Source: Trichosphaerium sp. ATCC 40318
Lineage: Eukaryota > Protista > Tubulinea
Assembly: GCA_038496445.1 (NCBI GenBank)
Contig: JALMLS010000313.1
Location: 5,039-69,038, forward strand
Direction: 5' to 3'
DNA: 64,000 bases
In this document: positions 2,707-53,614 of the stretch, in pieces
Layout of the letters: each line of letters starts with the position of its first letter
Numbering within the stretch: position 1 is the stretch's first letter
Notes under the pieces: generated by a model
Told to the model about the DNA's origin: nothing
What the model saw: the letters and a program-made list of their open reading frames with translations, nothing else
The model's database searches: none
Translations under genes and position numbers: made by a program

Positions 2707-3292
2707 TCATTGTTGATTAAGGACACGAACAAGTTTACCAATACATTCTGCCAAAGCGTTCAGATTAAATTTAAAATTACTGCGAGTCAAGAGATCCCAT
2801 TGGACTGCCAGCTCATCTACAACCTCCCTAGTAACTGCTTTTGTAAGTTGCGCAGCACTAGAGTCGGTTTGCATAAACAACAACCACTCTTGTAGGCACG
2901 CAAAGCTGATGTTGCTTTGGTTTTTTAGGAACTTTCCTGCCTTTTTGTTTAGCTCAGCTAGAGCGCCACAAACTAGCCCCTCACCGGTCACAAGATCTTG
3001 AATTGGTGGACTCTACAAAATAAAGACTAAGAAAAACAATAGTAAACTTGTTCTTCGTACCAAAACTTTGCACTCAGGTGTTGGTCTTAGCCCTTGTATC
3101 ATCCTACGATGGGCCAGGTTAATATCAAAAGAGAATGAAAAGAAATTAGAATTCGTCCAACACGTACTCCAGCTCTTCTTTGGTGAGTTCAATGCCGTTG
3201 ATAACCTTGTACACTTTATTGCTCCTACACAACATCTTACAAATGCAATAAAATGACACTATGAAGCCGCACTTGTTCTCGTTTGTACTCAT
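2707..3292 (-). CDS. Novel family member A, ~141 aa, 4 exons (MSTNENK-SNKVYKVINGIELTKEELE-MIQGLRPTPECKVL-SPPIQDLVTGEGL...VRVLNQQ)
   Basis: GT-AG introns in phases 2,2,0 join into one open frame; homologous to 14026-14624. Confidence 0.8.
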
Positions 3293-3762
3293 GGTCGTAT
3301 TGTAGAGTGATAGTAAAGTAAAGTCTTGACAAGTTGCTTTCTGTTAGACAAGATCCGATGTTTAAGTTGTCTGTTTAAGTTGTCTGTTTAAGGCAGCTTT
3401 CTAAGTCTGCTTGTCCATCTTACATTCCTCACACTGACATTGTTTGGCTTCTAACTTGTTAGTACATTCATCAAAAAGCAGCTGTTTTTCTGTTTAAACT
3501 GATTTACAACAGTACATCCTGCCTATGTACCGCGCATGGTGCACACGTTTGCTAATTGTTACGCAGCTTCAGTTTTAACACTCATGTTAACCTACTAGAC
3601 ACAGCATGAGCAGGAGAAAATACAGGGTACATTTTGTTAACAACGCGAGTCCGTAGCATTTTGTGTTACTTTATGCGCTTACAAAGTGAAATCACAACAA
3701 AAGTCGTCTGTGAAAGTCATTTATTGGCTATTAAACCTATGGAACCATTTCTTATCACCACA

Positions 3763-5580
3763 TTACTCTTCACTTTCCTCTTTAGAGGACTTGTTAGATT
3801 TAGAAGACTTCTCTTCCTTTTTGGAAGATTTATCGTCTCCAGCTTCTGATTTCGCTCTACGAGAGCTCTTCTTACGACTGCTTCTTGATGCACGAGCAGT
3901 TACAGGTTTCCCATTAGAGGATACCTCATCTTTGCTATTACCACGTGCGCTACAACATGTAACTGTAAACAACAGATTGTATATTTTAGATTCACTCACC
4001 TCTTAGTACGCCTATGAGACCTCTCTTGCTTTGCACCAGTCGCCATTGTATTCCGTCGCTTCTTTTTAATAGCTTTAATATCTGGAATAATGAGACGCTT
4101 ATCTGGTGGCGGTTTGGTGCATGGTGCAGAGATGACTAGATAAAAGATCAGTAACAAACCAATTTTGAACAGAAAAATACTGTACGTACCATCTTTAAGC
4201 ATGAATTCAAGGTAGCGCTTCGCGTAATCGGAAGCAGGTACAGTGGATAGAGTATCTATGGATTGTATTTTAGTGTAACATGCAAATAAAGTATATTTCG
4301 CGCACTCTCTTTCCACAAGGTACGTTTGAACATGTTGGCCAGTTTTTTTTTCGCGGAGAAATTTGTGAGGCAATCAATAATACCCATTACGTAGACTTCG
4401 TTGTATTCGCCTTCCAAATTGAACCCTCTGTAAATCTTAAAGCCTCGGAACCTTGCAGTGATGTTAAAACAATAAATAAGTATTTTTCCAAGCATACTTT
4501 CTCTTATTCTTGTTGTACTGTTCCTCGGTGTATACGCCAGCGAGTAAACTATAATCCATCACATTACAACCTTGTAATAGCTATAGTTATCGAGTTAGCG
4601 CGGTTTTCCTCGTTTACAAAATAAGATAGTGTTACTCGCCTGAACATCTGCATAGATTTGTGCCAGGTAATGCTTGTGATCCTGCCAGCGTTTGAAAGTA
4701 AACTGACGAGTAATTTCGTTATCTTTACGAATATTGTCGGCAACAGGTGCGCGATCATAAGGACCTTTGGCTGGCTTTGGCTTACGACCCTAGGAGCTTG
4801 TTGAAATTAAAGTGAAAAGAAGGACTCTTACTTTTAAGTCGTATTTCTCTTTTGTCTGGCATAATGTCAGCGTTACGTGTAGCAGATGTATGTAGTACCT
4901 TGACTTTAGGAAGTAAGTTGCCCATCACAATAACCCAGACCTTTTCTCCTTCAATCTCAATGCGGTTTAATGCGTAAATGCGCATCATAAACGATTTTTT
5001 GTACTTTTCGAGGTGCTGACAAAAGTTATTTTTTTGCGAACAAAACATTATAAAAGAGCTCCTTGACGCACTTGCACATATTGAGGTAGCATATGAAGTA
5101 AAGTACCAACTTCGTCATGAATAAGAGTTTTAAAAAAGAACCTTGTGTCTGTTGTCAAGAAGAAGCGTGAACCAGAGCGACTCGCGACATTGTCACCTTC
5201 CAATGCGGCCTCTTTTGGAACTTCCCACGATTTCTATTGAGGACGCGTTAGCGAAGTCACTAAAGCTACTAAACGACGTACGAGAAAGCTTTCATGGTCA
5301 ATACCGTTTAACATTCGTAGATGACGAAATACTTGAGGCGCATAGTCCTTGTATGCAACCTTACCGCTACTATTATCGCTTAGAACAAGTATGTAAAAGA
5401 AAAATCGCACTTTGTTGTATCAACTGTATCATTTTCCTCAACATGGTACTCCGTAGCGGTTAAATCTTCTACGATGTTATTTTCAGCCTCTGAAACCTAG
5501 ATTTTGTTACAACCTTTTATTCTAATGGCACTTACCATCTTTCTGATGGCTTCAATTGTACTAACAACAAACGAGGACAT
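3763..5580 (-). CDS. Phosphatidylinositol phosphate kinase (PIP5K family), multi-exon, with a Lys/Ser-rich C-terminal tail
   Basis: Spliced motifs YKDYAPQVFRHLR, SRSGSRFFLTTDTRFFFKT, YDLKGR, KDNE, MDYSLL, GIIDCLTNFSAKKKLA, LSTVPASDYAKRY. Confidence 0.92.
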
Positions 5581-5890
5581 GGAGGACTTCTCGTGCGATT
5601 ACTACTTACGAAAAAAATAGACCAAATAAACGCTTGTTGTAGCAAAAGCGCGTAAAAAGGACAACAATGAACACGACACGACAGACCAATAATGCAACTC
5701 TAATAAAAGTTCTTTTATTGGCTGCTGAGGCGGGATGCTTCCCTGGCATGCTGCTAGGTTGGCAAACGACTTAAGCTAGGTAACGTTGGCGTCGGTAGAG
5801 TATTTGAAACATTTCGCCAAAACTAGCCAAAACCTGTCCTGTTTTACTTACGCAGCTTAATTGTTGAATTTTTATGCAGAGCACTTTATT

Positions 5891-7936: not shown

Positions 7937-8045
7937 GGCGTGCGATAGTCAAATCGTGCTGTAACAAATACAAAAAAGACGAGTTGCGACCACAAGTGAT
8001 TCGATAAATTGGTACAAAAACAACTTTTTGAACGTTGAACCGACA

Positions 8046-9762: not shown

Positions 9763-11034
9763 ATGGAAGCGAAACGGTGTGAAGAAGCCTCAAGTCTTAC
9801 CAATATCAACACGGAGCTTTTAGACTTACCAACAGAGATTATCGCTCATTTGCTACAGTTTTTGAATCGGAATTATCTATTTTCTATTTCCCAGAGCTGC
9901 AAACGACTATGTACTATTACGCGGTATCACGTCGGATATGAAACAATAACTATTCGAGAACGTTCTCAACGAAGAGCCAGTTTGTGTTGCAAATTTCTTC
10001 GTGGCCGTCCATTTTTAAGTAATACGCAAATAACTGTATGGAATGAACTAACAGACTCAGATCTTAGTATGCTCTCTGGGGTTCGACACCTTATGATTAG
10101 AGAGGCTACCTTGATAACAGACAACGGATTGAAGTCTCTTTGTGGTGTTCGCTACTTATCATTAATGAACTCTGAAAACATCACAGACGCAGGATTAGCG
10201 CCGCTAGTGGGAGACCTAAGGGCTATTCAATTGCACAATATCACGAACGTAACCTCAGAGGCTATGAAAGCTTTTGCTGGGATACCAAATATAAGTATTG
10301 CATACTCTCCCGCTGTTACAGATGACGTTTTAGTTGCATTATCAGGAGTAAACGTGATAGATTTAGCTGGTTGTGAGAGCATTACGGATACTGGTGTTTC
10401 AGCTTTGGCTGGTGTTCATACCATAAAGTTGTGTGCTACGAATGTGACAGATGAAGGTGTTTCAGCTTTGGTTGGTGTACACACAGCCAATTTTTATGGT
10501 TGTAAGGGTATCACTGTAGAGTGTATGAAATATCTCGCAGGTGTACACAATATCACCCTATCGGAAACAAACGCAACAGATAATTGGATTAAACATCTGT
10601 CTGGTGTACACACTATCCATCTTCGATATTGTGGTATCACTGGTACGTGTTTCAAATATCTATCTGGAGTGCATGAAATTGATCTATCGAACTGTAATAA
10701 TATCAATGGAGATCACATGAAATACCTTGCTGGCGTACACACCATTCACCTTTCATCAACAAATGTAACAGATGATTGGATTAAACATTTGTCTGGTGTA
10801 CACACTATCCACCTTGTATCATGTCCAGGTATCACTGGCGAGAGTATGAAATACCTTTCAAATGCACACACTATCAATTTATGTACCAATAATGTAACAC
10901 CTGATTGGATCACCGATCTTTCCGGGGTTCAGAAGATAATGTTGAGCACCGCCGAAACTATCGAGTATCTGAAAACACTGGAAGGGTACCACGTATTTCA
11001 ATATTATTACATGCATGTCGTATATAAAATTTAG
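9763..11034 (+). CDS. F-box / leucine-rich repeat protein, intronless, 423 aa
   Basis: F-box LLDLPTEIIAHLLQFL...SQSCKRL followed by ~14 repeats of ~22-24 aa (LSGVHTIxLxxxxxITD). Confidence 0.92.
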   Translation: MEAKRCEEASSLTNINTELLDLPTEIIAHLLQFLNRNYLFSISQSCKRLCTITRYHVGYETITIRERSQRRASLCCKFLRGRPFLSNTQITVWNELTDSDLSMLSGVRHLMIREATLITDNGLKSLCGVRYLSLMNSENITDAGLAPLVGDLRAIQLHNITNVTSEAMKAFAGIPNISIAYSPAVTDDVLVALSGVNVIDLAGCESITDTGVSALAGVHTIKLCATNVTDEGVSALVGVHTANFYGCKGITVECMKYLAGVHNITLSETNATDNWIKHLSGVHTIHLRYCGITGTCFKYLSGVHEIDLSNCNNINGDHMKYLAGVHTIHLSSTNVTDDWIKHLSGVHTIHLVSCPGITGESMKYLSNAHTINLCTNNVTPDWITDLSGVQKIMLSTAETIEYLKTLEGYHVFQYYYMHVVYKI

Positions 11035-12284
11035 TGAGCGAACGTAGGATTCTTGGCCAAGCAATCGACCAAAAGCGAGCAACTCTGTATTCACTTGCGT
11101 CCGCTTTCTCGTATTTTTTTAACAAACAAGGGGAAGATGTATTCCATACAAATGTGTTAATTAAAAAATGTTACAATTCTAATTTAGTAATTATGTATTT
11201 TTAACATTTGCCACAGCTCTGTTGTGGTATGACAAGAAGCCAATACCTGTAAGACTTTACCATTGTAATTTGTAGGAATCATTGACATGGAATATCGATA
11301 AAAAAGATAAGCGATATCCATTTTTTATTGGTCATTATTCATTACTGTGAGTACGTACTTCTTTGTAAGAAGCAGCTCGTTTTACGCATGAGAAGGCAAA
11401 CGCCACAACAAAACATGAGTCACGGAGATGGTTTGGGTTATGAGTAATGACTTACTAAAAAATGGGTTCATCGTAACTGTTTTAATAGTACCAAAATTAA
11501 CTTCTTTGGCGACAATAACCAAGACAAATCAGACTACGGAGGCGAAACTATCTCAATATATTCTAAACAAAATAGTCTATTTTTGACGCGTTTAGGCTGC
11601 CGCACTTTGGTTTGTCGTGTACTTGTAGGACTTTTAAATAATTTATTTTACAACAGTATCAAAACTCCCTAAAACTTGCATTTTGAACGAGGAAAATGAT
11701 AATAATTGATAGTGCTCACTGATATTGCGCATTGTTTTTCTTTTAGGAAGCTGTATCTTTTCTTTTCTTGCAGAGTGCGTTCATTATTTATTTCTCTCGT
11801 GTCATAAGAGTTTAATTTCGAATATTTCCGGGTGAGATTCGAACAAATCCTGATAAATCACGACATTAGAGTTACAAGCGATTAGTAACTACAAAAGGTA
11901 ACTTCAATTGTCGGAGTTCTTTGTAAATTTACACGAACCAAAGATATCCAGTGATTCGTCCAAAAAACATACTTCGGAAATTTTACTAAAACAGTCTTCC
12001 TAACTCCGCAACATATCTTGTCATCACTGGAGAGGGTCAGTTTGGTTATTTGACGGTAACACAGAGTCTCAGATTGACGATATCATCGAGCAATTTTCTT
12101 GTGTACAACTTGGAGACTCAGCTTTTGATAACATCTCCTTTATAGTGAACCTTATTTGCGGTAAGACCTTAGTACAATGTTGAGTTGAAGTACACGCAAA
12201 GCAAGACCGCACACAGTAGCTTATATTTTTACTAGGGCTCTACGTTCCTTCATGGTAACAGATGCGAGAATAAACTCTACAATG

Positions 12285-12575
12285 TGTTGTGTTAACAGCT
12301 ACATGTTGTAGCACGTGGTAATAGCAATGGGGTATCCTCTGATGGGAAACCCGTAACTGCGTGTGCATAAAAGAAGCAGTCGTAAGAAGAGCTCTCGTAG
12401 AGCGAAATCAGAAGCTGGAGACGATAAATCTTCCAAAAAGGAAGAGAAGTCTTCTAAATCTAACAAGTCCTCCAAAGAGGAAAGTGTAGAATAAGGCGAT
12501 GACAAGAACTGAAGCTCTGTGGGATCAATAGCCAATAAATGTGTTTTACAGAAGACTTTTGTTACGATTTCGGTC
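12285..12575 (+). pseudogene. Duplicated last intron end, last exon and 3' UTR of the PIP5K gene
   Basis: Near-identical to the reverse complement of ~3690-3975 (SSRKKSSRRAKSEAGDDKSSKKEEK), with small deletions and a premature stop. Confidence 0.9.
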
Positions 12576-12849
12576 GAATTCAGACAATAGTGAACGCATT
12601 GATCAAACTGTTTTCGAAAGGTATGAAAATTAACATTTTTTTTTTATTTCATTTTCCGTTACTACACTACTACACCACGCACATACCAAACTCGAATTCG
12701 CGTGTAAATAATCCAAAAAAATCATCAATAACGCGTAAATATGTCGTGGCTATCGTGCAGGAGGGTTTTAGAAGAAATTCGCAAAAACCACAATTAAATT
12801 TTGATCAAAATAGTGATCAATAAAAGGATTTTAAATCGATTTTGTTAGT

Positions 12850-13090
12850 GGGGGCGTTAAACTGGGTGTTCGCAGTGGTACAAATACGTCCTCTCAAGAG
12901 TGCCCTGTTTCACCAGGGGTAGCAGGATACACGCGTCGAACGCCCGTAAGTATATTAACAATCTGCTTGCAAATGACCGGTTGACGATACCTCGCGTGCT
13001 AGATTGGAAAACAGTGCGTGAATAAGGCCATGGGTGTCTTGTCTAGAGCTAGTGGTGGCCCGTAGCTCTAAGGTCGAAAGACAATTTTTG
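12850..13090 (+). ncRNA. Candidate structured ncRNA (241 nt), family unassigned
   Basis: GC-rich island with nested stems GGGCGTT/AACGCCC, CCCTG/CAGGG, AGAGCTA/TAGCTCT, TTGTCT/AGACAA or GTC-GAAA-GAC; ends AATTTTTG. Confidence 0.4.
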
Positions 13091-14025
13091 CATCTATTTT
13101 ATTTTTCGTGTGAGTGGGTGAGTTGAGTTGAGTTGGGGTTGTAGTTTAAATAAAGGCTTTGTTTTTGGCTTTTTACCGTACGTTGGTTGACCTTACTTCC
13201 AAGCCGCAGTTTTGGTTACGCAGAGGTGGTGAACTAAAAATAAAAAGGGTGGAGTTTCGAAAACGAAACGGTACCTTTCGTTGGCTTACCCCAACACAGC
13301 CTACTTGCGAGCGATAGTATTATATGGGGCAATCACACGTTCTGCTCCAACAGTTCCAAACTAAGAAGTGCTTTGAGAGGCAAGGCATGATGAGAAATAC
13401 GTTTACAAAGGCATGTAGTGAGCAAAAGCGTACCCCTATCCCCTCCTCTGTTCGCCATAAAGTCGTTTCCAGCATACGAGAGATTTAAGCTAAAAGTGTT
13501 CTTTTACCTCCTCAGTTTCTCTCTCGCCAGTTTTTAACGCAAGCTAACCTCCTACCTCTACGCAGTGCGAGTAAGATAAGAAAAAAAAAGTAGCTGGGTC
13601 GTAAAATAGGTTTCTCAAAAAGAAAAATGGCTTCTGAAACGCACCAAACTACAAGCCTGCCAGTGCTATGAAATACTATCTTCATCGCGATTTGTAAGGA
13701 AAGAAGGACTCTGCCATCGAAAAACTAACGGTCTAGCAACCGATTACACTAGAAGATGCTAATTAAACACACGCCACGGCCGTTCGCGTTTGTGGGTTTT
13801 ACCACTGAATATTTTTTTAGATTGGTAAAAGAACGAACGAACGAACAGACAACGTCCATACTCCTGCAATCGAGAGTAGCTTGGACCTCTCAGACTGTTT
13901 GGAAAAGCTGGGCTTGCTTACGACGATAACTTAAGCTTAGTTTTTTTCGCTTCGTTTATCTTAACTTCGATAAATCAACCAACGCGTCTCAAGACTTTAC
14001 CCCCTTCTCTCACAAAATACGAACT

Positions 14026-14624
14026 ATGAGCACCAACAGCAGGTGCGGCTTCATAAAATTCCATTCTTTTACTTTTTGTGTAGAGCGAATCTCAGTCAAG
14101 ACGAGACCTCCAGCATCATTAAGAATGCGACTAAGGAAGAGATAGAGTACGTGTTTTTTGACAAATTCTACTCTACTCTTTTTTTTTTGGGGGTTTTTTG
14201 ATATTAACTTGCGTGCACAGGATGGTAAGAGGACAAAGACCCAGACCCAACCATCGAGTGCTGGTACGAACAACAAAGCTTAACATTATATTGAGTCTTT
14301 GGTTTTTTTTTGTAGAGTCCAGTGGGGAAGGTGCTCGTGTCTGGTAAGAAGCTGGAGGCGATCGCTGTCCACGAGCTTAACCAAAAGTCGGCGAGAGTGT
14401 TACAAACGCGTAGCAACATCACGTTTACAAACCTATCGGATTGGTTGTATTTTCTGCAACACGACCCTCACGCCGCGCGGCTCACGACAGCGATAACTCG
14501 TAAGGTTCTTAATGAGCTCGCTCTGCAACGCAACAACTGTAACCATCCGAATTCAGCTTTTAATCTGGACGTTATGCAGGATTGCGTCGATAAAATAATT
14601 TGTGTCCTAAATCGACAGAAATAA
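14026..14624 (+). CDS. Novel family member B, ~143 aa, 4 exons (MSTNSR-ANLSQDETSSIIKNATKEEIE-MVRGQRPRPNHRVL-SPVGKVLVSG...VLNRQK)
   Basis: GT-AG introns in phases 2,2,0, at the same positions as in member A; last exon = ORF 14322-14624. Confidence 0.8.
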
Positions 14625-15252
14625 ATGGCATTTGTTCTTTTTTTAAAATGGGTTGTGTTTGGCTACTGACAACTTGTCTGTGTTTGTTAACTTCCTTTTC
14701 GCTCAGTTTTGAGTATTTGATGACATGTTTGTATTGTTCACAAAACCAAGTTGTTGTTTGTATTGACAAAAATGTGGACTTCGCCAAAAAGGCACCTCGT
14801 CAAACAAGTAGACTGAACTAAATAGATATTGTTGTGAATAGCCTGCATTATCTCTAGTACCCTCAAGATAGTGAGAATCTCCTTCAAAGACCACATGTGC
14901 AGCGTTGAATGAGACAACAAATTGTGTAAAAGACGTACGTGGTAAAGTTTGTTTATTGGGACCTAGAGAAAAAAGTACAGCCTCTTTGCACAAGGTTGAA
15001 CGAATTTCTATGATATGTGTATAATGCGTGTTTATTTATTTTGTTTATTGGGTCCTTCTTTTCAAGTGGTGGAGGTATTTCCTCTCCATCACGCTTACAT
15101 TTTTACAAGTATTTTTTTTTTTGATAACAATAAATAATTTTTCATTTTAAAAGTGTTAAAAGTACAAGACGTTGTGTTGAAAAACACACTCAATTATGAT
15201 TGGTACACTCTTGTGTTCGCTACGAGAGAGTTAGAGTGATTGAAAATAAGAA

Positions 15253-16582
15253 CTAACATGATGTACCTATAGCTTGAACGTCATGGGCGCGGTCTGGGTC
15301 AATTAAAGACACGAGAGCCGAACAATGACCAAGTAGATCTTGGTGACTTTTACGTCGGCTGTGGAGTATGTCTCCTCGATCCTGCGCTATGCGGTGTAAG
15401 AGGTCTTTGGCCCTTACTGTGCTTCTGTTATTTAGCACCAAGTATGCCGCCAGAACCTTCCACACGCGCTTGTTGTAGAACAACTCATGATGCCACCCAC
15501 AAAAGTCTAAGCCACAGAGCAATGGCAACCCTTCTGGTAAGTGCTCATGCAAGCACATTACCGCTGCAAGACAGACTTGACAGACCTCTTGCATTAGGTA
15601 GTTATACCTATCCCAGAAGTCATTGTCAAAATTGACTTCTTTGTAATACTCCTCATCGAGGAGATCGCCGTGTTTTTCATTAAACCTAATGGTGCGTGAG
15701 TACGTTGTGCAAGAGTGGAAAAACAAAACCTGGGAGAGATGTTCTGAAATTAGCGAGTTGGCAAAAACGGCCTTATTTCGCAAAAAAAGTATAAAAACTA
15801 CGTTTATTTCCATGCGGACCGCTTTTTGTGAGCCACGTTTCATGAAAGAAAGAAATTCGTGATTTTGTGTGAAAAAGAAAATAAAAAATTTCATAACCCA
15901 GCAAAGAGGGCATCAAAGAAAAGGTGCGTACCGATTTTCATCGCGGAAAATGTAGTGAACCTTGTGACCTTAACACAACCCACATTAGCTTTGAGAAAAA
16001 AAAAAAAGGCAAAAAAAAAAAAACTAAACGTACACGGCAAAGCCCAATAGTTTTGTTCGCGGGCCATTACTTCAAGATTGTAGAGGAGAATATTACCGGC
16101 TCTATGAGCTTCAAGGTCAGGGCACTTGACCTTTCCGAACCAGCTCTTTAGGGTCACGAACTGATCTTCGATGAGTGTTGGCTTATTCATGAACTTGATG
16201 CATAATTTCCATTTATCAGTGTCCAGCCATTGCTTCAATGATAATACCCTTACTTCAGGGACTTTGTAAGGGTGAGCACGTCCCAGCGTTCTGTCAACTA
16301 TGACAGTCAAGTATTTTGCAATCTCCGAGAAGTTAGAGATATGAAATCTAAGCGCAATTAGTGTGGTATTTTTAAAACAATTAAAAAACACAGCAAAATT
16401 AAATTCTTTAAAAGCGTACACTATGGTCAACCGACGCCGTTTGGGTGGTCTGTAGCTTGTGAGACTGCTACTTTTACGTTTGCATGTCTAAAGGCGGTGT
16501 CATTGCCAATACTAATATTGAGTATGTAACTACGTACGTGTCGGTTTGAACGCTGGGCGTGACAATTATCACGAGTGGTCAT
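15253..16582 (-). CDS. Uncharacterised multi-exon protein with an N-terminal NLS-like PPKRRRL
   Basis: MTTRDNCHAQRSNRH|TCKRKSSSLTSYRPPKRRRLTIV|FHISNFSEIAKYL...; two long coding exons retained in both duplication arms; splicing of the last exon uncertain. Confidence 0.65.
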
Positions 16583-16812
16583 GTTAGAGGAGCTTGAAAA
16601 AATTGAAGAAATTTAACTTTTTTTCGAAATCTAAATGTAGGTCTGACATGTCCAAAAATAACTCGCCATTTTCAGGTGTCAAAAGCAAGCGTTGAAATGG
16701 CATTCTCCGTGTAAAATAAAACATGTCAACTAAAATAGCATTTATTTTTTTTGTCAAAATGAGAATTTATAGAATGGCAGTTTGTTTATCATGTAAGCTG
16801 TAGTGCGTTTTT

Positions 16813-17809
<997 letters not shown>

Positions 17810-19427
17810 GGTTAGGTATTCGTGTATTTATTGCTGTCTCAGTTCTAAAAAAAACTACCCGTGCTGATTTTAACTAACTCCCTCGTACGTGTAGCAATTT
17901 TTAAGTCACATTACGCATTTCAAATAAAGTCGCTCAAATTTCAACCACCTTTCAATCGTTTGGATATCTACTCTACTTTCGCTATCATGTTACGTGCGGG
18001 GGACTGGTACTTTCCTCGTTAGACAAAGCGAAGGTTTGGTCTAAAATCTAGTTTCAAAACAACTTGTCGTATGGACAACTTAGTGTGTTGAATAGTTGCC
18101 ATGAGCCCAGTGTACAATGGTTGAAAACGCGGTAAATCAGCCACCGGAAGCACTTGTGGATGCAGTTCCATTGTTGGAGAATAGCCTTGTTGCCGTCAAA
18201 AACGAACAAAAAGATTGTGGTACATTCTTTATTAGTATAATTTGTTTGTTGTAATCACTGTAGAAAAGAAGTTGTCGCGGGTAACCAAGATGGTCTGAAA
18301 CCATTACTTAGCCATTTGGGCGCGTACACACGCGCTTTTTTTACGCACCTATCAAAAAAAAATTCGGAATTACTTCGCTCGTACGTGGTTACTATGCAAA
18401 ACTACCAACATATGATGTAAAAAATGATTGTCAACACTATGTTGTCGTTGCTGATATTTGTGCCTGCCAATGTGATGGCTTCATTTAGTCGACATAACAG
18501 ACGGTTTGCAGTGTTAAACAATGTGGGCCTATATAGCTACAATGCTGTTCATACCTTAAATTCTACGCAATAAACATCACCGTTGTATAAATATGTCCTA
18601 GTGGCGTAGATTACGCTAATTGAGTATATTAACCTGCTACCACTGTCTTTCCTGCCGAAAAGTAAACGTGTGTACCGCGTAATAGTATCAGCGTCATCCA
18701 GCGGCATCAGTAAGTCGTTAGGAGGAACTGTGTGGAAGTAATTTTAGCCAGTCGAAAGACTTGTGTGGACCAGATTGCTAGTATCTTCAATACACTTACA
18801 CTAAGCTAAAAAATGTTGGTAGAGCTCCTAAATAATGGTAAGGTTCACCTTCATTATCTTGACGCTTTTTAAATTAAAATCACGTGATAAACACGTGCGA
18901 AATATTTTTCGAAAGGTATTTTGTTTGCAGACTACCTCACTGTAATGCCCCTCATTTCGGAATCAGAATGATGTGGTGGTGTGCTATCATTGTTGTGGTG
19001 CACTACGTGTAGAAAGTTATGGTACAAGGAAATCTACTGTAGAAGTTGCTCATCCTATGCTTCAATCTTGTAATACTAAGAAGGCAAAAGCAAATATTAA
19101 ACTAAAGCAGCGATTGTATTGATCCGCTCACATAGCTCTTTACGCGTAGAATAGGTCACCGCAACTATACGATCTCAGTGTCGTAAAACGTTCAAGTGAT
19201 GCTTTTATTGTTTCTCAGCTTTCTCAGCATACAGCTATCTTTTTCATAGCCTTTGGTGCTTTTAACGCACTCAAAACGAATGGTACGTTGCGTACTCGAA
19301 CAGGACCAACAGCTGGTGTGTACTAAAATGTCGATAAAAAAGTCGAAAAAAATGTCAAAGTGATATTGAACTGTTCGCCACAAAGGGAGACAACTGGGTT
19401 ATGGCGCTCAGTCGCCGCTAGGCTCTG

Positions 19428-20037: not shown

Positions 20038-20642
20038 ATGTCTGAACAATCTACTAGTCCATCTAGATCTTATAAGTACGCTTGCGAGCGCACCGTTTGT
20101 TTTTTTGTTTTTTAATGAATTTGTCTTAGCTATGCTCATATTAAAAGGGAGTGGTATCACCACCCTGACCCTTCGTTCTTCAGGGTCAAGCTAACTGAGG
20201 CCGATATTGAGTGCGTCGAGGTTTCTTTTCCTTGACATTAACTTAAACCCACTGTAGAAGGATAAGAAGGATAGAGATAAAGCCTCAACGAATTTTCGTA
20301 CGTTTGGCACTCAATTTATTTCAACCGCTGAACTTTTTTTAGCACCAAGAATCAGAAGATGCAAAAAATGCCTCCAAGAGGTTGCTGGAGGCCATTAACC
20401 TCACCAGCAGTAAGCTGGCCAAAAAAATGGTTTGCGAACCATTAAAGTTTAGATCACTTTCACACTGCCTTGACTGCTTAGAGGCGCAAGGGTGTGTACT
20501 AGCCAGGCGCCTGGACAAGATTATTTGTCCTGTCGCTTTTATGGCTGTCGTGGCGGGTGAACGCGTGTATGGTACTCTGATAGTTTGCAGAGACGCACAA
20601 ACAATTATAAGTGCTCTTGCTGAGGCGTGTAACGCAGAATAA
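20038..20642 (+). CDS. Novel family member C (divergent), ~152 aa, 4 exons
   Basis: MSEQSTSPSRSYN-YAHIKREWYHHPDPSFFRVKLTEADIE-RIRRIEIKPQRIF-HQESEDAKNASKRLLEAINLTSSKL...; intron phases 2,2,0 as in members A and B. Confidence 0.7.
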
Positions 20643-38576: not shown

Positions 38577-39529
38577 TTATTTTCCTTTTAGCGCTTTCAG
38601 ATACTTATCTGTAACTTCAATGATGTCCAAATACAGTATCTTTACGCTAGAAAGACGAGTGAGCCAACCAGGTGTTACATTATTACATAAATTGATAGTG
38701 TGTGCATTTGAAAGGTATTTCATACTCGCCAGTGATACCTGGACATGATACAAGGTGGATAGTGTGTACACCAGACAAATGTTTAATCCAATCATCTGTT
38801 ACATTTGTGTTTGATAAAGTGATATTATGTACACCTGCGAGGTATTCCATACAATCTACAGTGATACCCTTACAACCATAAAAATTGGCTGTGTGTACAC
38901 CAACCAAAGCTGAAACACCTTCATCTGTCACATTCGTAGCACACAACTTTATGGTATGAACACCAGCCAAAGCATCTATGCTGTGTACCCCCGATAGCGC
39001 AACTAAAACGTCGTCTGTAACTAACGAGCATGGAATAGTTACAGTTGGTATGCCGGCAAATGCTTTCATAGCCTCTGAGGTTACGTTTGTAATAGCATAC
39101 AAACCTACGGACTTAAGGTCTCCCACTAGTGGCATTAATCCTGCGTCTGTAATAGTTCGAGACTTCACTACTGATAAATGACGAACACCACAAAGAGACT
39201 TCAATCCGTTGTCTGTTATCAAGGTAGCCTAACCAATCGTAAGGTACCGAACACCAGAAAGCATACTGAGATCTGAGTCTATAAGTTTCCACAAAGTTAT
39301 TTGTGTATTGTGTAATAATGGACTGCCACAAAGAAATTTGCAACACAAGCTGACTATTTGCTCTTGAATCGTAATTGTTTCGTATCCAATGTGACACCGC
39401 ATAATATTGCATAGTAGTTTGCAGGTCTGGGTAACAGAAAACCGATAATAGAGATGCACAAACTTGATCCGTTGGTAAGTCTAAAAGCTCAGTGTGACTT
39501 GAGACTTCTTCGTAACGCTTCGCTTCCAT
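38577..39529 (-). pseudogene. Inverted paralogue of the F-box/LRR gene 9763-11034, frameshifted and with a stop
   Basis: MEAKRYEE...ELLDLPT, ITDNGLKSLCG, VHTIKLCATNVTDEG; coding sequence split over several frames; upstream 39530-39690 matches 9595-9762. Confidence 0.9.
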
Positions 39530-40087: not shown

Positions 40088-41905
40088 TCACCACAAATGT
40101 GCGCCCTTGTGGACCAACTGTAGGTAACAGCAATTTCTTATCAAAGTTGAATAGAGAGGAGCGGGTCTGGGAATCAGAGGCAATGAGGTGAGCCAAGCTG
40201 GCTCAAATAAATAAAATAAAAATATATCTTGAAATATGTATTTCAACTCACCATCACTACGAACCTTATGGGTATTACCAATTGTAATACGCCCCTTGTC
40301 TGCGTTCAAGAAATTTGACTAAAGACATCTCAGTTCAAAGGTGTTTTTGACTAATATTTTCGAGTTGAATAGAAGTGAAAAGATAAGAAAAAAATGGGAT
40401 CAAAATTACATTGACTATCGACTTGCATGGTCGACTCACCTTTGGCAATGGTGTCATCATTGAGAACATCCTCCATATATCACGTTTGGTGGGGTTGGAC
40501 AAAACTAAATAGACGAGTTGAAGTGCTGTTGACTTGCAATATTTTTCAAGATGAGAACAGAAGAAAAAAAAAAAGAATGCATCAACGTAGTTGTGCATGG
40601 GTTGACTCACCAGCAGAGTTGAAATCTTCATCAACGTCCTCATATACCTCTTTTTTGTTTTCGCGTGGATAGAACTAGAAAGAGATAAATTTAAGACCGC
40701 TGTTGAAGTACATAGTTGAGCGTAGAAGAAAAAAAATGAAGATTAGAAAAAATGTTGTATTGTAGCTGTACTATTTACCTTCCATCTCAAGACCAAATTG
40801 AGCCCCAGTTTGTATACCAATGGATTTTGACAAGTTGATCTCATTTTGCAATTGACAAATGCTTCTCATCATATTCTTCACGTGAGATATAGCGACAGGA
40901 TCCAAGCTTCGTAACTGAGTTCCCATCTAAAAATACTAATTGTAAACCTAAATTACACTCCACTAACTATCGTAGAACGTGAATAGCACACTGCCACTGT
41001 ATGTTCTTCCGCCATCTACTGATACTGCTACATGTACTGGTTTGGGCTAAACAATCTCCGTTTACATCAGGCATTTATCGTCGGGGTATACCAATATCCG
41101 TCTATAGCGGGTGTCAATTTTAACTTACATTGTTTGAGTGCTTGAGTAATGACATTAGATAAAAGTACCAGTATATTAGATGAAGCATGCCATTCAACGT
41201 CTGTAAAGACATGTTTGCCAAACTTAACTTTTGTGTTTTTCGACGGTTTAAAATTTAAACCGTACAAACTGACGTGGTACACGCCAGATATTGGGCCTTT
41301 TGGAGGAACAACAAGGTTCACGCAACAAACTAGGGAGTGCCAAATAGTATTTGTTGTGTTGACAAGCAACATTTTCGATAATTTTCACCGAAGCGTCGTT
41401 TGGTGCATTGCTCGTAGATCCGTGTATTTTGGCGATCACCGGCTTTTTTTGTGCAATTTGCTTCTTTCTTTTCATGCGAATGGGTGTCTAGTTGTTTTGG
41501 ATCCACAATTTAGTACGGTACCTAGCCAAAAAATTAAGCTAAACAACTCCAAAAGGTGATAAGGAGTAAGTTTTAAAGAACTCCATAAAGATACTAAAAT
41601 TATCACCAAGCTTTGAAAACGAAAGAAAAAACGTGGACCAAGGGTAATAATTTATCTTACAAAACAGCATTGTACATTTGCTAATAAATCAAGATGCGAA
41701 TTTATGATCATAATACAAAACCAGAGAACCAGAAGTGATAATTGCAGAGGACCACAAAAGAGCACGTGTTGTCGCAGTTCCTTGTTGTATCGTAACCAGC
41801 GTTCTAATATCAAGCGTTCTGGCTTACCACCCTACCTTGTTGAAATTAAAGCGAAAAGAAGCCTCGTAGTAGCGTTACGTGCTGCCAAATGTCAGTGTAC
41901 CTGTA
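40088..41905 (-). pseudogene. IPT/TIG-domain gene, apparently 5'-truncated or degenerate
   Basis: VVPPKGPISGVYHVSLYGLNF...VKFG...PVHVAVSVDGGRTYSGSVLFTFYD is an IPT/TIG signature; some exon phases do not join; abuts the Rab2 pseudogene. Confidence 0.55.
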
Positions 41906-41921: not shown

Positions 41922-42521
<600 letters not shown>

Positions 42522-42751
42522 AAAAACGCACTACAGCTTACATGATAAACAAACTGCCATTCTATAAATTCTCATTTTGACAAAAAAAATAAATGCTATT
42601 TTAGTTGACATGTTTTATTTTACACGGAGAATGCCATTTCAACGCTTGCTTTTGACACCTGAAAATGGCGGGTTATTTTTGGACATGTCAGACCTACATT
42701 TAGATTTCGAAAAAGAGTTAAATTTCTTCAATTTTTTCAAGCTCCTCTAAC

Positions 42752-44079
42752 ATGACCACTCGTGATAATTGTCACGCCCAGCGTTCAGACCGACACGTAC
42801 GTAGTTACATACTCAATATTAGTATTGGCAATGACACCGCCTTTAGACATGCAAACGTAAAAGTAGCAGTCTCACAAGCTACAGACCACCCAAACGGCGT
42901 CGGTTGACCATAGTGTACGCTTTTAAAGAATTTGCTTTTGCTGTTAAATTGTTTTAAAAATACCACACTAATTGCGCTTAGATTTCATATCTCTAACTTC
43001 TCGGAGATTGCAAAATACTTGACTGTCATAGTTGACAGAACGCTGGGACGTGCTCACCCTTACAAAGTCCCTGAAGTAAGGGTATTATCATTGAAGCAAT
43101 GGCTGGACACTGATAAATGGAAATTATGCATCAAGTTCATGAATAAGCCAAGACTCATCGAAGATCAGTTCGTGACCCTAAAGAGCTGGTTCGGAAAGGT
43201 CAAGTGCCCTGACCTTGAAGCTCATAGAGCCGGTAACATTCTCCTCTACAATCTTGAAGTAATGGCCCGCGAACAAAACTATTGGGCTTTGCCGTGTACG
43301 TTTAGTTTTTTTTTTTTTGCCTGTTTTTTTTCTTCTCAAAGCTAATGTGGGTTGTGTTAAGGTCACAAGGTTCACTACATTTTCCGCGATGAAAATCGGT
43401 ACGCACCTTTTCTTTGATGCCCTCTTTGCTGAGTTATGAAATTTGTTATTTTCTTTTTCACACAAAATCACGAATTTCTTTCTTTCATGAAACGTGGCTC
43501 ACAAAAAGCGGTCTGCATGAAAATAAACGTAGTTTTTATACTTTTTTTGCGAAATAAGGCCGTTTTTGCCAACTCTCGCTAATTTCAGAACATCTCTCCC
43601 AGGTTTTGTTTTTCCACTCTTGCACAACGTACTCACGCACCATTAGGTTTAATGAAAAACACGGCGATCTCCTCGATGAGGAGTATTACAAAGAAGTCAA
43701 TTTTGACAATGACTTCTGGGATAGGTATAACTACCTAATGCAAGAGGTCTGTCAAGTCTGTCTTGCAGCGGTAATGTGCTTACATGAGCACTTACCAGAG
43801 GGGTTGCCATTGCTCTGTGGCTTAGATTTTTGTGGGTGGCATCATGAGTTGTTCTACAACAAGCGCGTGTGGAAGGTTCTGGCGGCATACTTGGTGCTAA
43901 ATAACAGAAGCACAGTAAGGGCCAAAGACCTCTTACACCGCATAGCGCGGGATCGAGGAGACATAGTCCACAGCCGACGTAAAAGTCACCAAGATCTACT
44001 TGGTCATTGTTCGGCTCTCGTATCTTTAATTGACCCAGACCGCGCCCATGACGTTCAAGCTATAGGTACATCATGTTAG
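42752..44079 (+). CDS. Duplicate of the uncharacterised gene 15253-16582
   Basis: Same exons, few substitutions (e.g. PTL/PRL, AQD/ARD, DIL/DIV); splice sites retained. Confidence 0.65.
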
Positions 44080-44566
44080 TTCTTATTTTCAATCACTCTA
44101 ACTCTCTCGTAGCGAACACAAGAGTGTACCAATCATAATTGAGTGTGTTTTTCAACACAACGTCTTGTACTTTTAACACTTTTAAAATGAAAAATTATTT
44201 ATTGTTATCAAAAAAAAAAATACTTGTAAAAATGTAAGCGTGATGGAGGAAATACCTCCACCACTTGAAAAGAAGGACCCAATAAACAAAACAAATAAAC
44301 ATGCATTATATACATATCGTAGAAATTCAATGTAAATCCGCTACGTCTCAAGTGTTTATTCTGGCTTCGTTTTCTTCTACACATTCGTCTTAAAATTGTT
44401 TTTCTGGCTTGTTCAACCTCTTGTGCAAAGAGGCTGTACTTTTTTCTCTAGGTCCCAATAAACAAACTTTACCACGTACGTCTTTAAACAATTTGTTGTC
44501 TCATTTAGCGCTCTACATGTGGTCTTTGAAGGAGATTCTCACTATCTTGAGGGTACTAGAGATAAT

Positions 44567-46026
44567 TCCTTCAGAACAAACAGACTCAATATCTTCACTC
44601 TTCTTAACTTGGCTACAAGCGTAGGATCTGGTTTGCTAACATCAAAGGAGCTTCTTTTGTTATATTGGACGCCCTCTTTTTTTTATAAGACTCATAGAGC
44701 TAACCCAAAGTTGATGTTCGCATTGTTACAATCTAACAAATGCGCGGCTACGACGTACCTTGCCAGCGGGTCACTGAAATTGGCTTAACAAAATCAGTTT
44801 ATCAACTTGACAAAAGTCCAGAGTTTGACATTACAATCGGCAAGTGACAGGAAAAAAAAAACATTTTACACACCTAGCCGCAAAACTCTCCGACCCTTCA
44901 CTAGAACCAGATTATGTAAGCATACCACATAAGCTTAATGGCTTTAACATACACTTTAAAAATATTCTATGCAATAAGAAAGCATAAGATGGTGCTGTAA
45001 GCTCAAAAAAAAATATGTAGTAAATTACAATCTCGCCTAAACAGGAAAGTAACAATTTTAAACCATGTGTGTCCTTTTGTGATGCCTGAGTATTACAGAA
45101 TGTGTGAATAGCTCCATGTATGTGGAAACGAAAGTTATGAACGTTGAACAGCGTTTTTTGGTTCAAAAAGTGGATTGCTCGCTAAAACCCAGTTTAAATA
45201 CTCTAAACGATATTTCCTACGCGTAGAGGGTATGTATGTGCATTAAATACGCTATTTGAATTAAGAAAACAATAAAAAGTCAAAACGCTAGCCAACGCCA
45301 TCAATACTGTGTAATATGCTTCTGTTAGCTGTTTCTTTTTGATGTACCTATTTCACTGTTTATTTGGGTTTCTACCTTTAGAAACATGTACATTTTTAAA
45401 ACGGAAGCGGTTAATTGGTATGTGTATTTTTCAAAACATCATAGTGGTACTACTGTATCATCTACTCTGTTTCAACTAGAAAAGTGTAGAACACAACGTA
45501 TAACATCAGTGTAGATTGGATAGAGCATGAATTTCAACAAATGTCGTTCAACAAACTCCCATATTAGAAGCACTTTATTGTGCTCTTAATTTTAAACACA
45601 CAACATATGGCGTTAAATACAACCATTACCAGCTAGAAAATGTAACAAAACTCAGAATGAAGATGTTTGTATTGATGCTGACTTAGCTAAACTAATTTAA
45701 AAAAAGTCACAAAGTTGTACTATTTTTTAGCGTCATTGTAGACTACATCACTACATGTGAATACCTAACGCTTAACAGACGTTATTCACATCATATGTGG
45801 TTATAACTACACAAAGCATCGATCATAGAAATGTATTTTAAAGAGCATACGTAAGTTTGTTTTTAAGAGTGGAGTGCTTGCATAATAGGCTCAAGCATAA
45901 GTCGCCACTACAGAAAATGTGTTCAGCACTCAAGTGGTTGCCGTTAACGTACCAACCTTACCGTATGTGAAGTAATAATCACTGTTAACACGTTAGGTGT
46001 GTTAGAAAGCGAAACCTTTTTCATTG
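44567..46026. other. ~1.46 kb segment present only in the right arm
   Basis: Replaces the 20-bp gcaggctattcacaacaata of the left arm between gtactagagataat and tctatttagttcag. Confidence 0.8.
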
Positions 46027-46219
46027 TCTATTTAGTTCAGTCTACTTGTTTGATGAGGTGCCTTTTTGGCGAAGTCCACATTTTTGTCAATACAAACAAC
46101 AACTTGGTTTTGTGAACAATACAAACATGTCATCAAATACTCAAAACTGAGCGAAAAGGAAGTTAACAAACACAGACAAGTTGTCAGTAGCCAAATAAAA
46201 AAAATAATGCCATTTATTT

Positions 46220-46830
46220 CTACACGGCTTTATGTTGATTTAGGACACAAATTATTTTATCGACGCAATCCCGCATAACGTCCAGATTAAAAGCTGAATT
46301 CGGATGGTTACAGTTGTTGCGTTGCAGAGCGAGCTCATTAAGAACATTACGAGTTATCGCTGTCGTGAGCCGCGCGGCGTGAGGGTCGTGTTGCAGAAAA
46401 TACAACCAATCCGATAGGTTTGTAAACGTGATGTTGCTACGCGTTTGTAACACTCTCGCCGACTTTTGGTTAAGCTCGTGGACAACGATCGCCTCCAGCT
46501 TCTTACCAGACACGAGCACCTTTCCCACTGGACTCTACAAAAAAAAAAACCAAAGACTCAATATAATTTTGTTAAGCTTTTGTTGTTCGTACCAGCACTC
46601 GATGGTTGGGTCTGGGTCTTTGTCCTCTTACCATCCTGTGCACGCAAGTTAGTATCATAAAACCCCCCAAAAAAAAAGAGTAGAGTAGAATTTGTCAAAA
46701 AACACGTACTCTATCTCTTCCTTAGTCGCATTCTTAATGATGCTGGAGGTCTCGTCTTGACTGAGATTCGCTCTACACAAAAAGTAAAAGAATGGAATTT
46801 TATGAAGCCGCACCTGCTGTTGGTGCTCAT
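46220..46830 (-). CDS. Novel family member B' (recent duplicate of 14026-14624)
   Basis: Same four exons; A>V, K>N, Q>R changes and altered C-terminus VLNQHKAV*. Confidence 0.8.
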
Positions 46831-47769
46831 AGTTCGTATTTTGTGAGAGAAGGGGGGTAAAGTCTTGAGACGTGTTGGTTGATTTATCGAAGTTAAGATA
46901 AACGAAGCGAAAAAAACTAAGCTTAAGTTATCGTCGTAAGCAAGCCCAGCTTTTCCAAACGGTCTGAGAGGTCCAAGCTACTCCCGATTGCAGGAGTATG
47001 GATGTTGTCTGTTCGTTCGTTCTTTTACCAATCTAAAAAAATATTCAGTGGTAAAACCCACAAACGCGAACGGCCGTGGCGTGTGTTTAATTAGCATCTT
47101 CTAGCGCGTGGTTGGTGTAATCGGTTGCTAGACCGTTAGTTTTTCGATGGGCAGAGAGGCCTTCTTTCCTTACAAATCGCGATGAATATAGTATTTCATA
47201 GCACTGGCAGGCTTGTAGTTTGGTGCGTTTCAGAAGCCGTTTTTCTTTTTGAGAAACCTATTTTACGACCTCAGCATCTACTTTTTTTTTCTTATCTTAC
47301 TCACACTGCGTAGAGGTAGGAGGTTAGCTTGCGTTAAAAACTGGCGAGAGAGAAACTGAGGAGGTGAAAGAACACTTTAGCTTAAATCTCTCGTATGCTG
47401 GAAACGCGAACAGAGGAGGGGATAGGGTTACGCTTTTGCTCACTACATGCCTTTGTAAACGTATTTCTCATCATGCCTTGCCTCTCAAAGCAGTTTTTAT
47501 TTGGAACTGTTGGAGCAGAACGTGTGATTGCCCCATATAATACTATCGCTCGCAAGTAGGCTGTGTTGAGGTACGCCAACGAAAGGTACCGTTTCGTTTT
47601 CGAAACTCCACCCTTTTTATTTTTAGTTCACCACCTCTGCGTAACCAGAACTGCGGCTTGGAAGTAAGGTCAACCAACGTACGGTAAAAAGCCAAAAACA
47701 AAGCCTTTATTTAAACTACAACCCCAACTCAACTCAACTCACTCACTCACACGAAAAATAAAATAGATG

Positions 47770-48010
47770 CAAAAATTGTCTTTCGACCTTAGAGCTACGG
47801 GCCACCACTAGCTCTAGACAAGACACCCATGGCCTTATTCACGCACTGTTTTCCAATCTAGCACGCGAGGTATCGTCAACCGGTCATTTGCAAGCAGATT
47901 GTTAATATACTTACGGGCGTTCGACGCGTGTATCCTGCTACCCCTGGTGAAACAGGGCACTCTTGAGAGGACGTATTTGTACCACTGCGAACACCCAGTT
48001 TAACGCCCCC
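47770..48010 (-). ncRNA. Second copy of the candidate 241-nt structured ncRNA
   Basis: Appears identical to the reverse complement of 12850-13090. Confidence 0.4.
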
Positions 48011-48289
48011 ACTAACAAAATCGATTTAAAATCCTTTTGTTGATCACTATTTTGATCAAAATTTAATTGTGGTTTTTGCGAATTTCTTCTAAAACCCTCC
48101 TGCACGATAGCCACGACATATTTACGCGTTATTGATGATTTTTTGGATTATTTACACGCGAATTCGAGTTTGGTATGTGCGTGGTGTAGTAGTGTAGTAA
48201 CGGAAAATAAAATTCAAAAAAAAATGTTAATTTTCATACCTTTCGAAAACAGTTTGATCAATGCGTTCACTATTGTCTGAATTCGACCG

Positions 48290-48575
48290 AAATCGTAACA
48301 AAAGTCTTCTGTAAAACACATTTATTGGCTATTGATCCCACAGAGCTTCAGTTCTTGTCATCGCCTTATTCTACACTTTCCTCTTTAGAGGACTTGTTAG
48401 ATTTAGAAGACTTCTCTTCCTTTTTGGAAGATTTATCGTCTCCAGCTTCTGATTTCGCGCTACGAGAGCTCTTCTTACGACTGCTGCTTGATGCACGAGC
48501 AGTTACGGGTTTCCCATTAGAGTATACCTCATCTTTGCTATTTCCACGTGTGCTAAAACGCGGAACTGTAAACAT
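48290..48575 (-). pseudogene. Third copy of the PIP5K last exon (frame and acceptor intact, orphaned)
   Basis: ttttag|CACACGTGGAAATAGC...GAATAA = TRGNSKDEVYSNGKPVTARAS...KEESVE*. Confidence 0.85.
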
Positions 48576-48957
48576 AGCGGGTTGTACTCTAAAGGCATTG
48601 AATGTACGGCTTATTTCTTTTTTAGACGTTAGAGGTTCTATAAACAAAGGCGCTAACAAGACAACGTTGCGATTTCACGCACAAGCGGTCAAGATACTGG
48701 CACTAGCACTTGAGTGATTTTGTTGAGCAACTAAGTTTCTCACTCCAGTCCTGTATTTTCTCATCAAACGGGCATACGCACTGCAAAGCACGTACAGAGC
48801 TAAGCATGCACTATCATAAGCTTAATAACACAGTTTGTTATGCCATTGTAATTTTAATGTACAGTAAAATACAAGGAGATTAAAAAGTACCCTAAGTGAA
48901 AAGTATTTTTCTTTCGATTCGGTTTTTTGACGTAATGCCACCGCAAAAAAGGAAACA

Positions 48958-51674: not shown

Positions 51675-53038
51675 AGTAGCGCGAATTAAATTGGTACGCG
51701 TGATGCTGCGTGAAATGGTGCGTTTCAGTGACAATTACTAAGTAAGGTCTCTTAATAAGTCTTCTGTGGCTTTCCAAATCTTTCTAGCTACTCATCATTA
51801 CGGCTTCTGTTGTGAGTGTGATGAACCTTTGCGGACTAGTATTTTTTCAAGCCGTAGCTGAACTAGAAATCAATGTTTTCTGTCAACTTCGTAGCGACAG
51901 CGGCATCGCGGTAACCATAACCATCTTTAGCTCCTGTCCTCAGTATATGTCACTTACACGTTTTTTGTTTAGCACACAGCACGCTTCACGCGATTTTTGG
52001 ATACGCAAATAACACGTGAAGCAGGGCAAATATTTCAAATCTCATCTGCTCCACAACACTAGTAACTCTTCCAATCTCAGTATAAAGCCTGTTTCACGTT
52101 AGTACTACGTAAATCACCGTTTCTATTTGGTTCAAGCGTAAGCAGGTATCGTCAAAGCTAGTTTGAAACTTTGTCTACTATTTTACATGCTAATTCTCTG
52201 TAGGAAACTAAACTTGGCTAACAGTTACATGCAACTACTTGTGAGAAAACTGAGGCACGGCAAACTTGGGTTTTGAAGCACGTTACACGTTTTTTTTTAA
52301 AAATCCTATGCACAATGTGTTGTTGACCTTGCAACATTGTTGGTTCTAACCCTATCAGAGTTTAAAGGAGTATCGCTGAGAAACTTTGCTCAAGCGCCTG
52401 AAACACCAACGCTTTTCTACAAGCCACAGATACGTACTTTCCCCAAATTTTGATTTCAAACACTGGGTATTCTTGACGTTGACCTTTGCTTAGGCGTTTA
52501 CTTTGGCAGATGATGCAACGTAAGGCGTATGCTACTTCTTCCCGCTCCAAACTTGTGTATCAAAGGGTCACCAGTGAATACACCTTTCAAGAAAATGAAA
52601 ACAGTACGTTTCCAGTTTTCTGTCAACCATCCATTTGTTTTTATCTTTTTTTCTTCCTCACGTGCAATGTACTTATCACAGCATTAGATTTTCTACAAAC
52701 TGAGATGGTACTTAGCAGAGGACTTTGTGCTAGTATTAACTTGATGTGGACTACTGCTATCACTACACGATGAGAAGTCTACCAACCATTCTTTCCTAGT
52801 ATGAATTCTTCCATAACGCAAGTGGACGCTTACATGAAGATACGGAATAAACACGTCTGGAAGGCATTTGATACCATATCGCGACAATGGCGTGGCGATG
52901 TAGTTGTACGTTTTTGGTTGCCATGATTAAACCCGTAAAACAATTTGCTGGCAAAAAAAACTTTGTAGAGATCACTGCCATAGTGGCGTGAGTAGTTGAG
53001 GAATTTTAATTTAACAACAAATGCTGACGCTTGTTTAG

Positions 53039-53614
53039 ATACTGGACCCGGACGATGCAACTAATGTCTACGCATGTGACCTACGGAATGATACATGCAT
53101 CCGGACAAAAGCTTTCCGGGTCAATTCCTTTCGAGTTGCTCTTTTGTCAACTGTACCCGGAAGTAGCTTTTATCTGGGTGCATATACCATTCTGTTCCTT
53201 TCGACAGTTTAATGCAAAAGAAGCTTTTGTCCGGATGCATGTACCATTCCGTGGTCACGTGCATGGATTAAGAGCAAATAAGGTGCGTCAAGACGATTCC
53301 CTTTTGTTGTCATTAACATGAACGTCCTGTAGAAGAACACGGAATGCTGAAACAAAGCCACAAGAGATATGCGTACGTTTGGCATTTCAAGTCAGCAATA
53401 AACACTAAATCTTTTCTAGCTACTAGACCCATGTGAAGCCACCAAAGTATATAGGTGTGGCCTCGAACTGGTCGAGGCAATAAATCTCGCCAGCAGTAGG
53501 CTGGCACGAAGAATGTGGTGCGACCCACTGAGCTGCACCTCCTTGCCAGAGTGGCGCGAGTGCTTACTAGCACAAGAGTGTCGTCTGGCAAGAGAGCTGA
53601 ACAGGATTATTTGA
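53039..53614 (+). pseudogene. Novel family member D (paralogue of 20038-20642), disrupted by a foldback element and a premature stop
   Basis: tgtag|RTRNAETKPQEIC|gtacgtttggca matches member C exon 3; LVEAINLASSRLARRMWCDPLSCTSLPEWRECLLAQECRLARELNRII* matches member C exon 4. Confidence 0.8.
53065..53268. mobile_element. ~200-bp MITE/foldback element with ~50-bp terminal inverted repeats
   Basis: 53066-53114 vs 53221-53268 inverted (core TACATGCATCCGGACAAAAGCTT perfect); internal third degenerate copy at 53166-53194; TAA on both flanks. Confidence 0.75.

Follow-up and report, generated by a model that had tools for sequence, protein, structure and literature searches.

What do the small, intron-split genes scattered over this stretch of the Trichosphaerium sp. 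ATCC 40318 genome encode, and what might their products do? The stretch of 64,000 nucleotides, called the window below, corresponds to C240:5039-69038 of the 70 Mb genome and has a G+C content of about 39% throughout. We read the genes as members of a lineage-specific family of minimal stand-alone HEPN-domain proteins, a new family of a known superfamily, and assign this reading a probability of about 0.6. The original prediction, which had found the family by eye, recognised no domain in it. This statement is superseded by a probable minimal HEPN domain, to which the sequence motif, its position in AlphaFold models, language-model neighbours and sub-threshold Pfam matches all point.

Gene Models

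The window contains four intact four-exon genes (A, B, C and D), along with two broken copies and three fragments. The intact genes belong to two subtypes, A/B-type and C-type:

2707-3292, minus strand: gene A, A/B-type, 141 amino acids; exons 3292-3273, 3224-3168, 3103-3061 and 3012-2707
14026-14624, plus strand: gene B, A/B-type, 143 amino acids; exons 14026-14042, 14084-14146, 14221-14263 and 14316-14624
20038-20642, plus strand: gene C, C-type, 152 amino acids; exons 20038-20075, 20130-20210, 20258-20297 and 20343-20642
46220-46830, minus strand: gene D, twin of B, 145 amino acids

Each of the four genes is described by a single clean model with an ATG start, GTRCG donors and YAG acceptors. 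Their three introns are 41-74 nt long and lie in phases 2, 2 and 0, the last exon comprises about 100 codons, and the products are 141-152 amino acids in length (130-160 residues in the family as a whole). The identical layout recurs in eight paralogues on other contigs, which brings the number of complete models with the same four-exon structure to 12. The hidden small-protein family with this exon and phase layout is thus confirmed by one model per intact gene and by the eight paralogues of like build. In family members, exon 2 ends with (T/S)xxxxE and exon 3 is 37-43 nt long. The last exon is helical; residues N22, L40, L56 and L98 are invariant, and F37 is present in all copies but one.

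Evidence for a Probable HEPN Domain

The motif R-N-x-x-x-H, in its canonical form, occupies one alignment column in both subtypes. Among the A/B-type copies it reads RNNCNH in B (14529-14546) and D (46304-46321; the C-terminus of D is altered relative to B), RNDLYH in one copy each on contigs C306 and C260, and RNYLQH in a copy on contig C16. One C-type copy on C306 carries RNNGAH, and the sequence RHENLH of a broken copy (53778-54233) aligns in the same column. Anantharaman et al. (2013, PMC3710099) define the HEPN signature as Rx4-6H in which a polar residue (N, D or H) follows the arginine, and the motif-bearing copies conform to it. The motif is absent from the A lineage, from C and from two copies on C260, which amounts to at least four losses with the reading frames still open. 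Gene A has WDLLTR where the catalytic motif would be, and gene C has ERVYGT in a motif region that is deleted or changed.

The AlphaFold models and the searches were made with the last exons rather than with the full-length spliced proteins. The last exon of B was modelled with a predicted local distance difference test score (pLDDT) of 80.6 and a predicted template modelling score (pTM) of 0.73; for the motif-bearing C-type last exon the values were 89.3 and 0.82. Both models feature the same five-helix arrangement. The arginine and asparagine of the motif end the penultimate long helix, and the histidine starts the loop to the last helix or precedes it by one residue (helix 62-75 with R72, N73 and H77 in B; helix 66-80 with R76, N77 and H81 in the C-type model). 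The HEPN definition places the motif at the end of helix 3 (PMC3710099), and both last exons, as modelled, have it at this position.

Three structure rankings contain a strong excess of HEPN domains, the matches to the B last-exon structure being HEPN-enriched; on a second look, HEPN domains made up 13/50 of Foldseek's own list. Solved HEPN chains align from about residue 20-40 onward, which suggests that the last exon would supply helix 2, a helical insert, helix 3 and helix 4. Helix 1 would probably be supplied by the approximately 40 residues of exons 1-3. The definition also includes a conserved acidic residue in helix 2, often as Ex3[KR] (PMC3710099). On this reading, the helix that aligns with helix 2 carries ELNxK (Ex3K) in most A/B-type copies; the C16 copy, one C260 copy and the C-type copies do not have it.

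Sequence-based methods point in the same direction. Most of the named language-model neighbours of B, and of a C-type copy 18% identical to it, are HEPN families (scores 0.75-0.90), among them RnlA/LsoA HEPN_RnaseLS and Csm6 HEPN, as well as Ymh for B. In a comparison with 24,736 Pfam models, the most recurrent sub-threshold matches across members were HEPN_Swt1 (E 0.008-0.023) and HEPN_RiboL-PSP (E 0.014-0.065), both collinear to the C-terminus of the profile.

Several points weigh against the HEPN reading. Half of the copies are without the motif, and the putative helix 1 lies outside the models. Foldseek, including its Protein Data Bank search, gave no significant match for the last-exon models, and a fold search of the atlas gave no match. 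The language-model scores are leads only and are possibly driven by the motif itself. No Pfam family matched above its curated threshold: the best match, PF18731 HEPN_Swt1, reached 16.9 bits (E 0.0082) with a cut-off of 27.5, and PF18735 reached 15.7 bits with a cut-off of 28.4. Conversely, genome searches with PF05168 and PF13643 did not match the family loci, and a genome search with the HEPN_Swt1 model did not find the family genes. Finally, gene B has no contig in the single RNA-like run, which was available as Logan contigs, was compared with 12300-18299 and cannot show a gene to be silent; no splice junction of the family is RNA-confirmed. The splicing of the family is therefore supported by comparative evidence.

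An alternative that we consider unlikely, yet the strongest of those weighed, is a lineage-specific helical-bundle family unrelated to HEPN, with RNxxxH arisen by chance or convergence and with adaptor, structural or regulatory proteins devoid of nuclease activity. It has to contend with a motif that falls in the same column across subtypes less than 25% identical and whose place in the structure is the defining one for HEPN, with the over-representation of HEPN in all three structure rankings, and with the agreement of two independent sequence-based methods, the language-model neighbours and Pfam. Should the HEPN reading fail, the genes would still form a clean orphan family in birth and death within a segmentally duplicated region.

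Relatives and Known Systems

No relative of the family was found in 5.8 billion word-indexed clustered proteins, in viral contigs or in metagenome contigs. The 1.84 billion representatives read fully by HMMER gave no relative either, the only two matches being borderline and at least one of them a junk tandem-repeat protein. A profile search of the Protein Data Bank produced a chance-level match to NLRC4 and nothing else, and PADLOC likewise gave a single chance-level match, to AbiEii. The family had been put forward as undescribed, and these searches bear this out: it is lineage-restricted and unlisted. It is not placed in any named HEPN family, as it agrees with the definition in motif and motif position and falls below every curated sequence threshold.

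Solo Swt1-like or Ava_2192-like HEPN proteins have been described in dictyostelids and Naegleria and have expanded to 46 copies in Daphnia (Anantharaman et al. 2013, PMC3710099). Like the studied family on the HEPN reading, they are small solo HEPN proteins with an intact RNxxxH, expanded by lineage, amoeboid protists included; HEPN_Swt1 is the best sub-threshold Pfam match of the studied family, yet far under the cut-off (16.9 vs 27.5 bits). Unlike them, the studied family is interrupted by three introns of conserved phase and combines apparently active with motif-less copies. The bacterial HepT toxins of HEPN-MNT pairs (PDB 5yep, 7ae6 and 8xdj) are minimal HEPN proteins of about 130 amino acids with Rx4H and are among the best structural matches, with a root-mean-square deviation of 2.5-3.1 Å over 85-91 residues. 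The studied family differs from them in being eukaryotic and intron-bearing, and has neither an adjacent nucleotidyltransferase antitoxin nor sequence similarity to HepT. The motif-less copies can be likened to the inactive HEPN domains of Roquin, which is among the top structure matches, and of the conserved Swt1 protein; these keep the fold after the loss of Rx4-6H and presumably bind RNA. However, they are domains of large conserved proteins, whereas the inactive forms studied here are solo paralogues of apparently active ones.

If the HEPN reading is true, the family would be a new one within the superfamily, invisible to sequence searches and made of about the smallest possible stand-alone domains, in a protist. 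Protist HEPN RNases are suspected to act in conflicts with viruses and selfish elements and are almost unstudied.

A second small HEPN-like family was observed in the same genome, at C1:647922-651221 (open reading frame 1441-1872 on the minus strand within this segment), with a further copy at C1:647364-647795. It features KLNEK, 48 residues and then RNAVCH, a spacing like that of the studied family, and has a weak HEPN_Swt1 match (E 0.016). No homologues of it were found outside, and hhalign showed no link to the studied family. A DUF4145 gene on contig C110 had no hhalign relation to the studied family either.

Genome-Wide Distribution and Duplication

A six-frame search of the whole genome was run with individual last exons as well as with a profile. 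The search returned 13 intact last exons and a number of broken pieces, all on contigs C240, C260, C306 and C16. The copies form two clades, the A/B-type (n = 9) and the C-type (n = 3). Last-exon identity between the types is 15-24%, in line with the low identity between subtypes noted by eye, and the two profiles are nevertheless homologous (hhalign, 88% probability, E 2.8e-6); a non-significant alignment of the subtypes had been named in advance as a reason to give up the family. The C-type paralogues found on C260 and C306 show 46-52% identity and have the same exon layout. The branch-site block of intron 2, TTGATATTAAC, is common to the A/B-type copies, and most of it is also found in the C-type copies.

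The remaining family members of the window, located by tblastn and profile search, are listed below:

53039-53775, plus strand: C-type pseudogene; last-exon match 53423-53671 with one in-frame TGA and one TAG
53778-54233, minus strand: rearranged A/B-type copy, missed by the original prediction, nearest to the C260 gene at 41026-41310
984-1192, minus strand: family fragment from the end of a last exon
1206-1301, plus strand: family fragment from the start of a last exon
1410-1545, minus strand: family fragment resembling A in exon 3 and the beginning of exon 4

The pseudogene had been proposed at 53039-53614 on the plus strand and is confirmed as a C-type copy; it also contains an inverted exon-2-like piece at 53127-53195. 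In the rearranged copy, an 81-nt (27-codon) segment occurs four times (53822-54145) and is followed by RHENLH and an early stop, so the last helix is missing. Fragments had been claimed at 1175-1310 (plus strand) and 1311-1670 (minus strand). They are present, with slightly different boundaries from those claimed; the DNA of 1175-1310 is 93% identical to gene B.

Genes B and D lie in an inverted duplication of 5 kb, in which 12312-17275 matches 48550-42039 with about 98% identity:

12312-17275: left arm of the inverted duplication, carrying B; the right arm, 42039-48550, carries D

The two genes cannot be counted as independent copies, because both sit in this one recent duplication. Between contigs, C306 and C260 are 98-99% identical over long blocks and are therefore alleles or very recent duplicates. 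C240 shares 88-93% identity with both of them over more than 14 kb. Gene B precedes C in the window, and the order is the same on C306 and C260. Copy content varies among the three contigs, and the B-like gene of C306 lies in a 7.2 kb stretch that is absent from C240. Copies have thus been gained, lost and broken between duplicated contigs, as the suggestion of birth-and-death turnover implied. The family would expand and decay through segmental duplication in a rearranging region.

Selection

In the predicted frame, the ratios of nonsynonymous to synonymous substitution rates (dN/dS) are 0.18-0.40 for old paralogue pairs (38-56% protein identity), whose synonymous sites are saturated; these values therefore support real coding genes. 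In the A lineage, three near-identical copies (A and two on C306, about 98% identical) differ by ten synonymous changes and one nonsynonymous change, and this motif-less lineage is clearly under purifying selection. B and D differ by five nonsynonymous changes and one synonymous change. The recent motif-bearing pairs taken together (B/D and C306/C260) show nine nonsynonymous changes and one synonymous change, which is compatible with neutrality. The contrast between 9:1 in these pairs and 1:10 in the A lineage is significant by Fisher's exact test (p = 3.5e-4), with small counts. The description of the family as fast-evolving is thus weakly supported, by the recent motif-bearing pairs and not by the old pairs, which are under purifying selection. 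The idea that exons diverge faster than introns was rejected, as the similarity of homologous introns (0.64) is just slightly above that of non-homologous introns (0.51), mostly through splice signals.

Genomic Context and the Upstream Island

The neighbours of the family in the window are ordinary cellular genes: F-box/LRR, Ras, a glycosyl hydrolase fragment, PX, MORN and RasGEF. A transposon or viral context was rejected, as no such domains occur in the open reading frames of the window; Rfam and tRNA searches gave no matches. The F-box/LRR genes at 9763-11034 (plus strand) and 38650-39290 (minus strand) contain segments 82-92% similar (10046-10842 vs 38725-39287) and represent a second inverted paralogous pair.

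A conserved island is found 0.4-1.5 kb upstream of seven family genes. Two parts make up the island, first the final exon of a gene that encodes a K/S/E-rich tail and then a transcribed RNA element:

12271-12989, plus strand: conserved island about 1 kb upstream of B, with copies at 3688-3988 (minus strand, A) and 47871-48550 (minus strand, D)
12311-12500 (plus strand), 3688-3988 (minus strand), 48349-48550 (minus strand), C306:7274-7500 and C16:572458-572700: last exon within the island, with a TTGTAG acceptor

From module to module the island retains 70-91% identity, against only about 60% for the family genes, and its identity also far exceeds that of the DNA in between. The last exon encodes a K/S/E-rich tail with the sequence SRKKSSRRAKSEAGDDKSSKKEEKSSKSNKSSKEESVE and has frame-breaking indels in some copies. 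Next to A and two C16 copies the gene to which it belongs seems complete, whereas nothing but the last exon is left of it beside B, D and the C306 copy. The upstream open reading frame beside A (3996-4373, minus strand) matches one on C16 with 100% protein identity and includes a hydrophobic stretch. As for the RNA element, a 182-nt contig of the RNA-like run matches 12878-13059 (minus strand) exactly and stands alone. A second copy of this segment lies in the other duplication arm near 47800-47980, and Rfam returned nothing for it. About eight further places in the genome contain sequence related to 12659-12989, some of them far from family genes.

Proposed Activity and Regulation

The chain that we infer, from HEPN homology through RNase activity and dimerisation to a role in conflict or defence, would run as follows. 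The copies with R-N-x-x-x-H (B, D, the C306/C260 pair, the C16 copy and one C-type copy) are predicted metal-independent endoribonucleases, which, if they resemble solved HEPN enzymes, would dimerise and form a composite active site. The motif-less copies (the A lineage, C and two C260 copies) are probably non-catalytic and may be RNA binders, or partners or regulators of the active copies.

The HEPN RNase superfamily is known from toxins and antiviral effectors. The original prediction had guessed at toxin or antiviral functions, and this class of guess is reasonable because the superfamily of the probable HEPN fold includes both. A toxin/antidote or defence role would be plausible; none of the results demonstrates toxin/antidote pairing, drive or recognition of self and non-self. 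As a definite module, in which active RNA-cutting effectors are neutralised or regulated by their motif-less paralogues or by the gene with the K/S/E-rich tail, it is a special case of the HEPN reading that we regard as decidedly improbable. It is favoured by active and inactive copies lying together in duplicated regions (B then C, and likewise on C306 and C260), by at least four motif losses with the frame kept, by the 9:1 and 1:10 counts (p = 3.5e-4) and by a homologous gene upstream of A and two C16 copies. However, active and inactive copies have no fixed pairing or spacing, the upstream gene has shrunk to a last exon in the modules of B, D and the C306 copy, and the substitution counts are small. 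Nor was the adjacent neutralising gene of toxin-antitoxin systems found, as no partner stands at constant spacing. Narrower still, and somewhat less probable again, is a toxin/antidote-like or antiviral system made entirely of HEPN paralogues, in which dead sisters would check active mini-RNases via mixed dimers; it would sit in a hypervariable region whose set of copies varies from one duplicated or allelic contig to another. Since dead copies are retained side by side with varying live ones, and the A lineage is conserved, the locus would offer a cheap test of whether inactive HEPN proteins regulate active ones.

Evidence from RNA

That the gene models are unexpressed, decaying relics of an old duplication, with frames open by chance, is very improbable: B has no contig in the RNA-like run and several copies are plainly broken, but 12 copies retain frames, splice sites and phases despite 40-55% protein divergence, the dN/dS values and the ten synonymous changes to one nonsynonymous in the A lineage speak for constraint, and one contig-only run cannot prove silence.

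The run does behave as RNA, as it contains spliced contigs of the Ras-family GTPase gene at 16725-17842 (minus strand). These contigs confirm the five introns of this gene, which are 46-104 nt long. One Ras contig differs from the window at many third-codon-like positions; therefore, a close paralogue or allele is also expressed.

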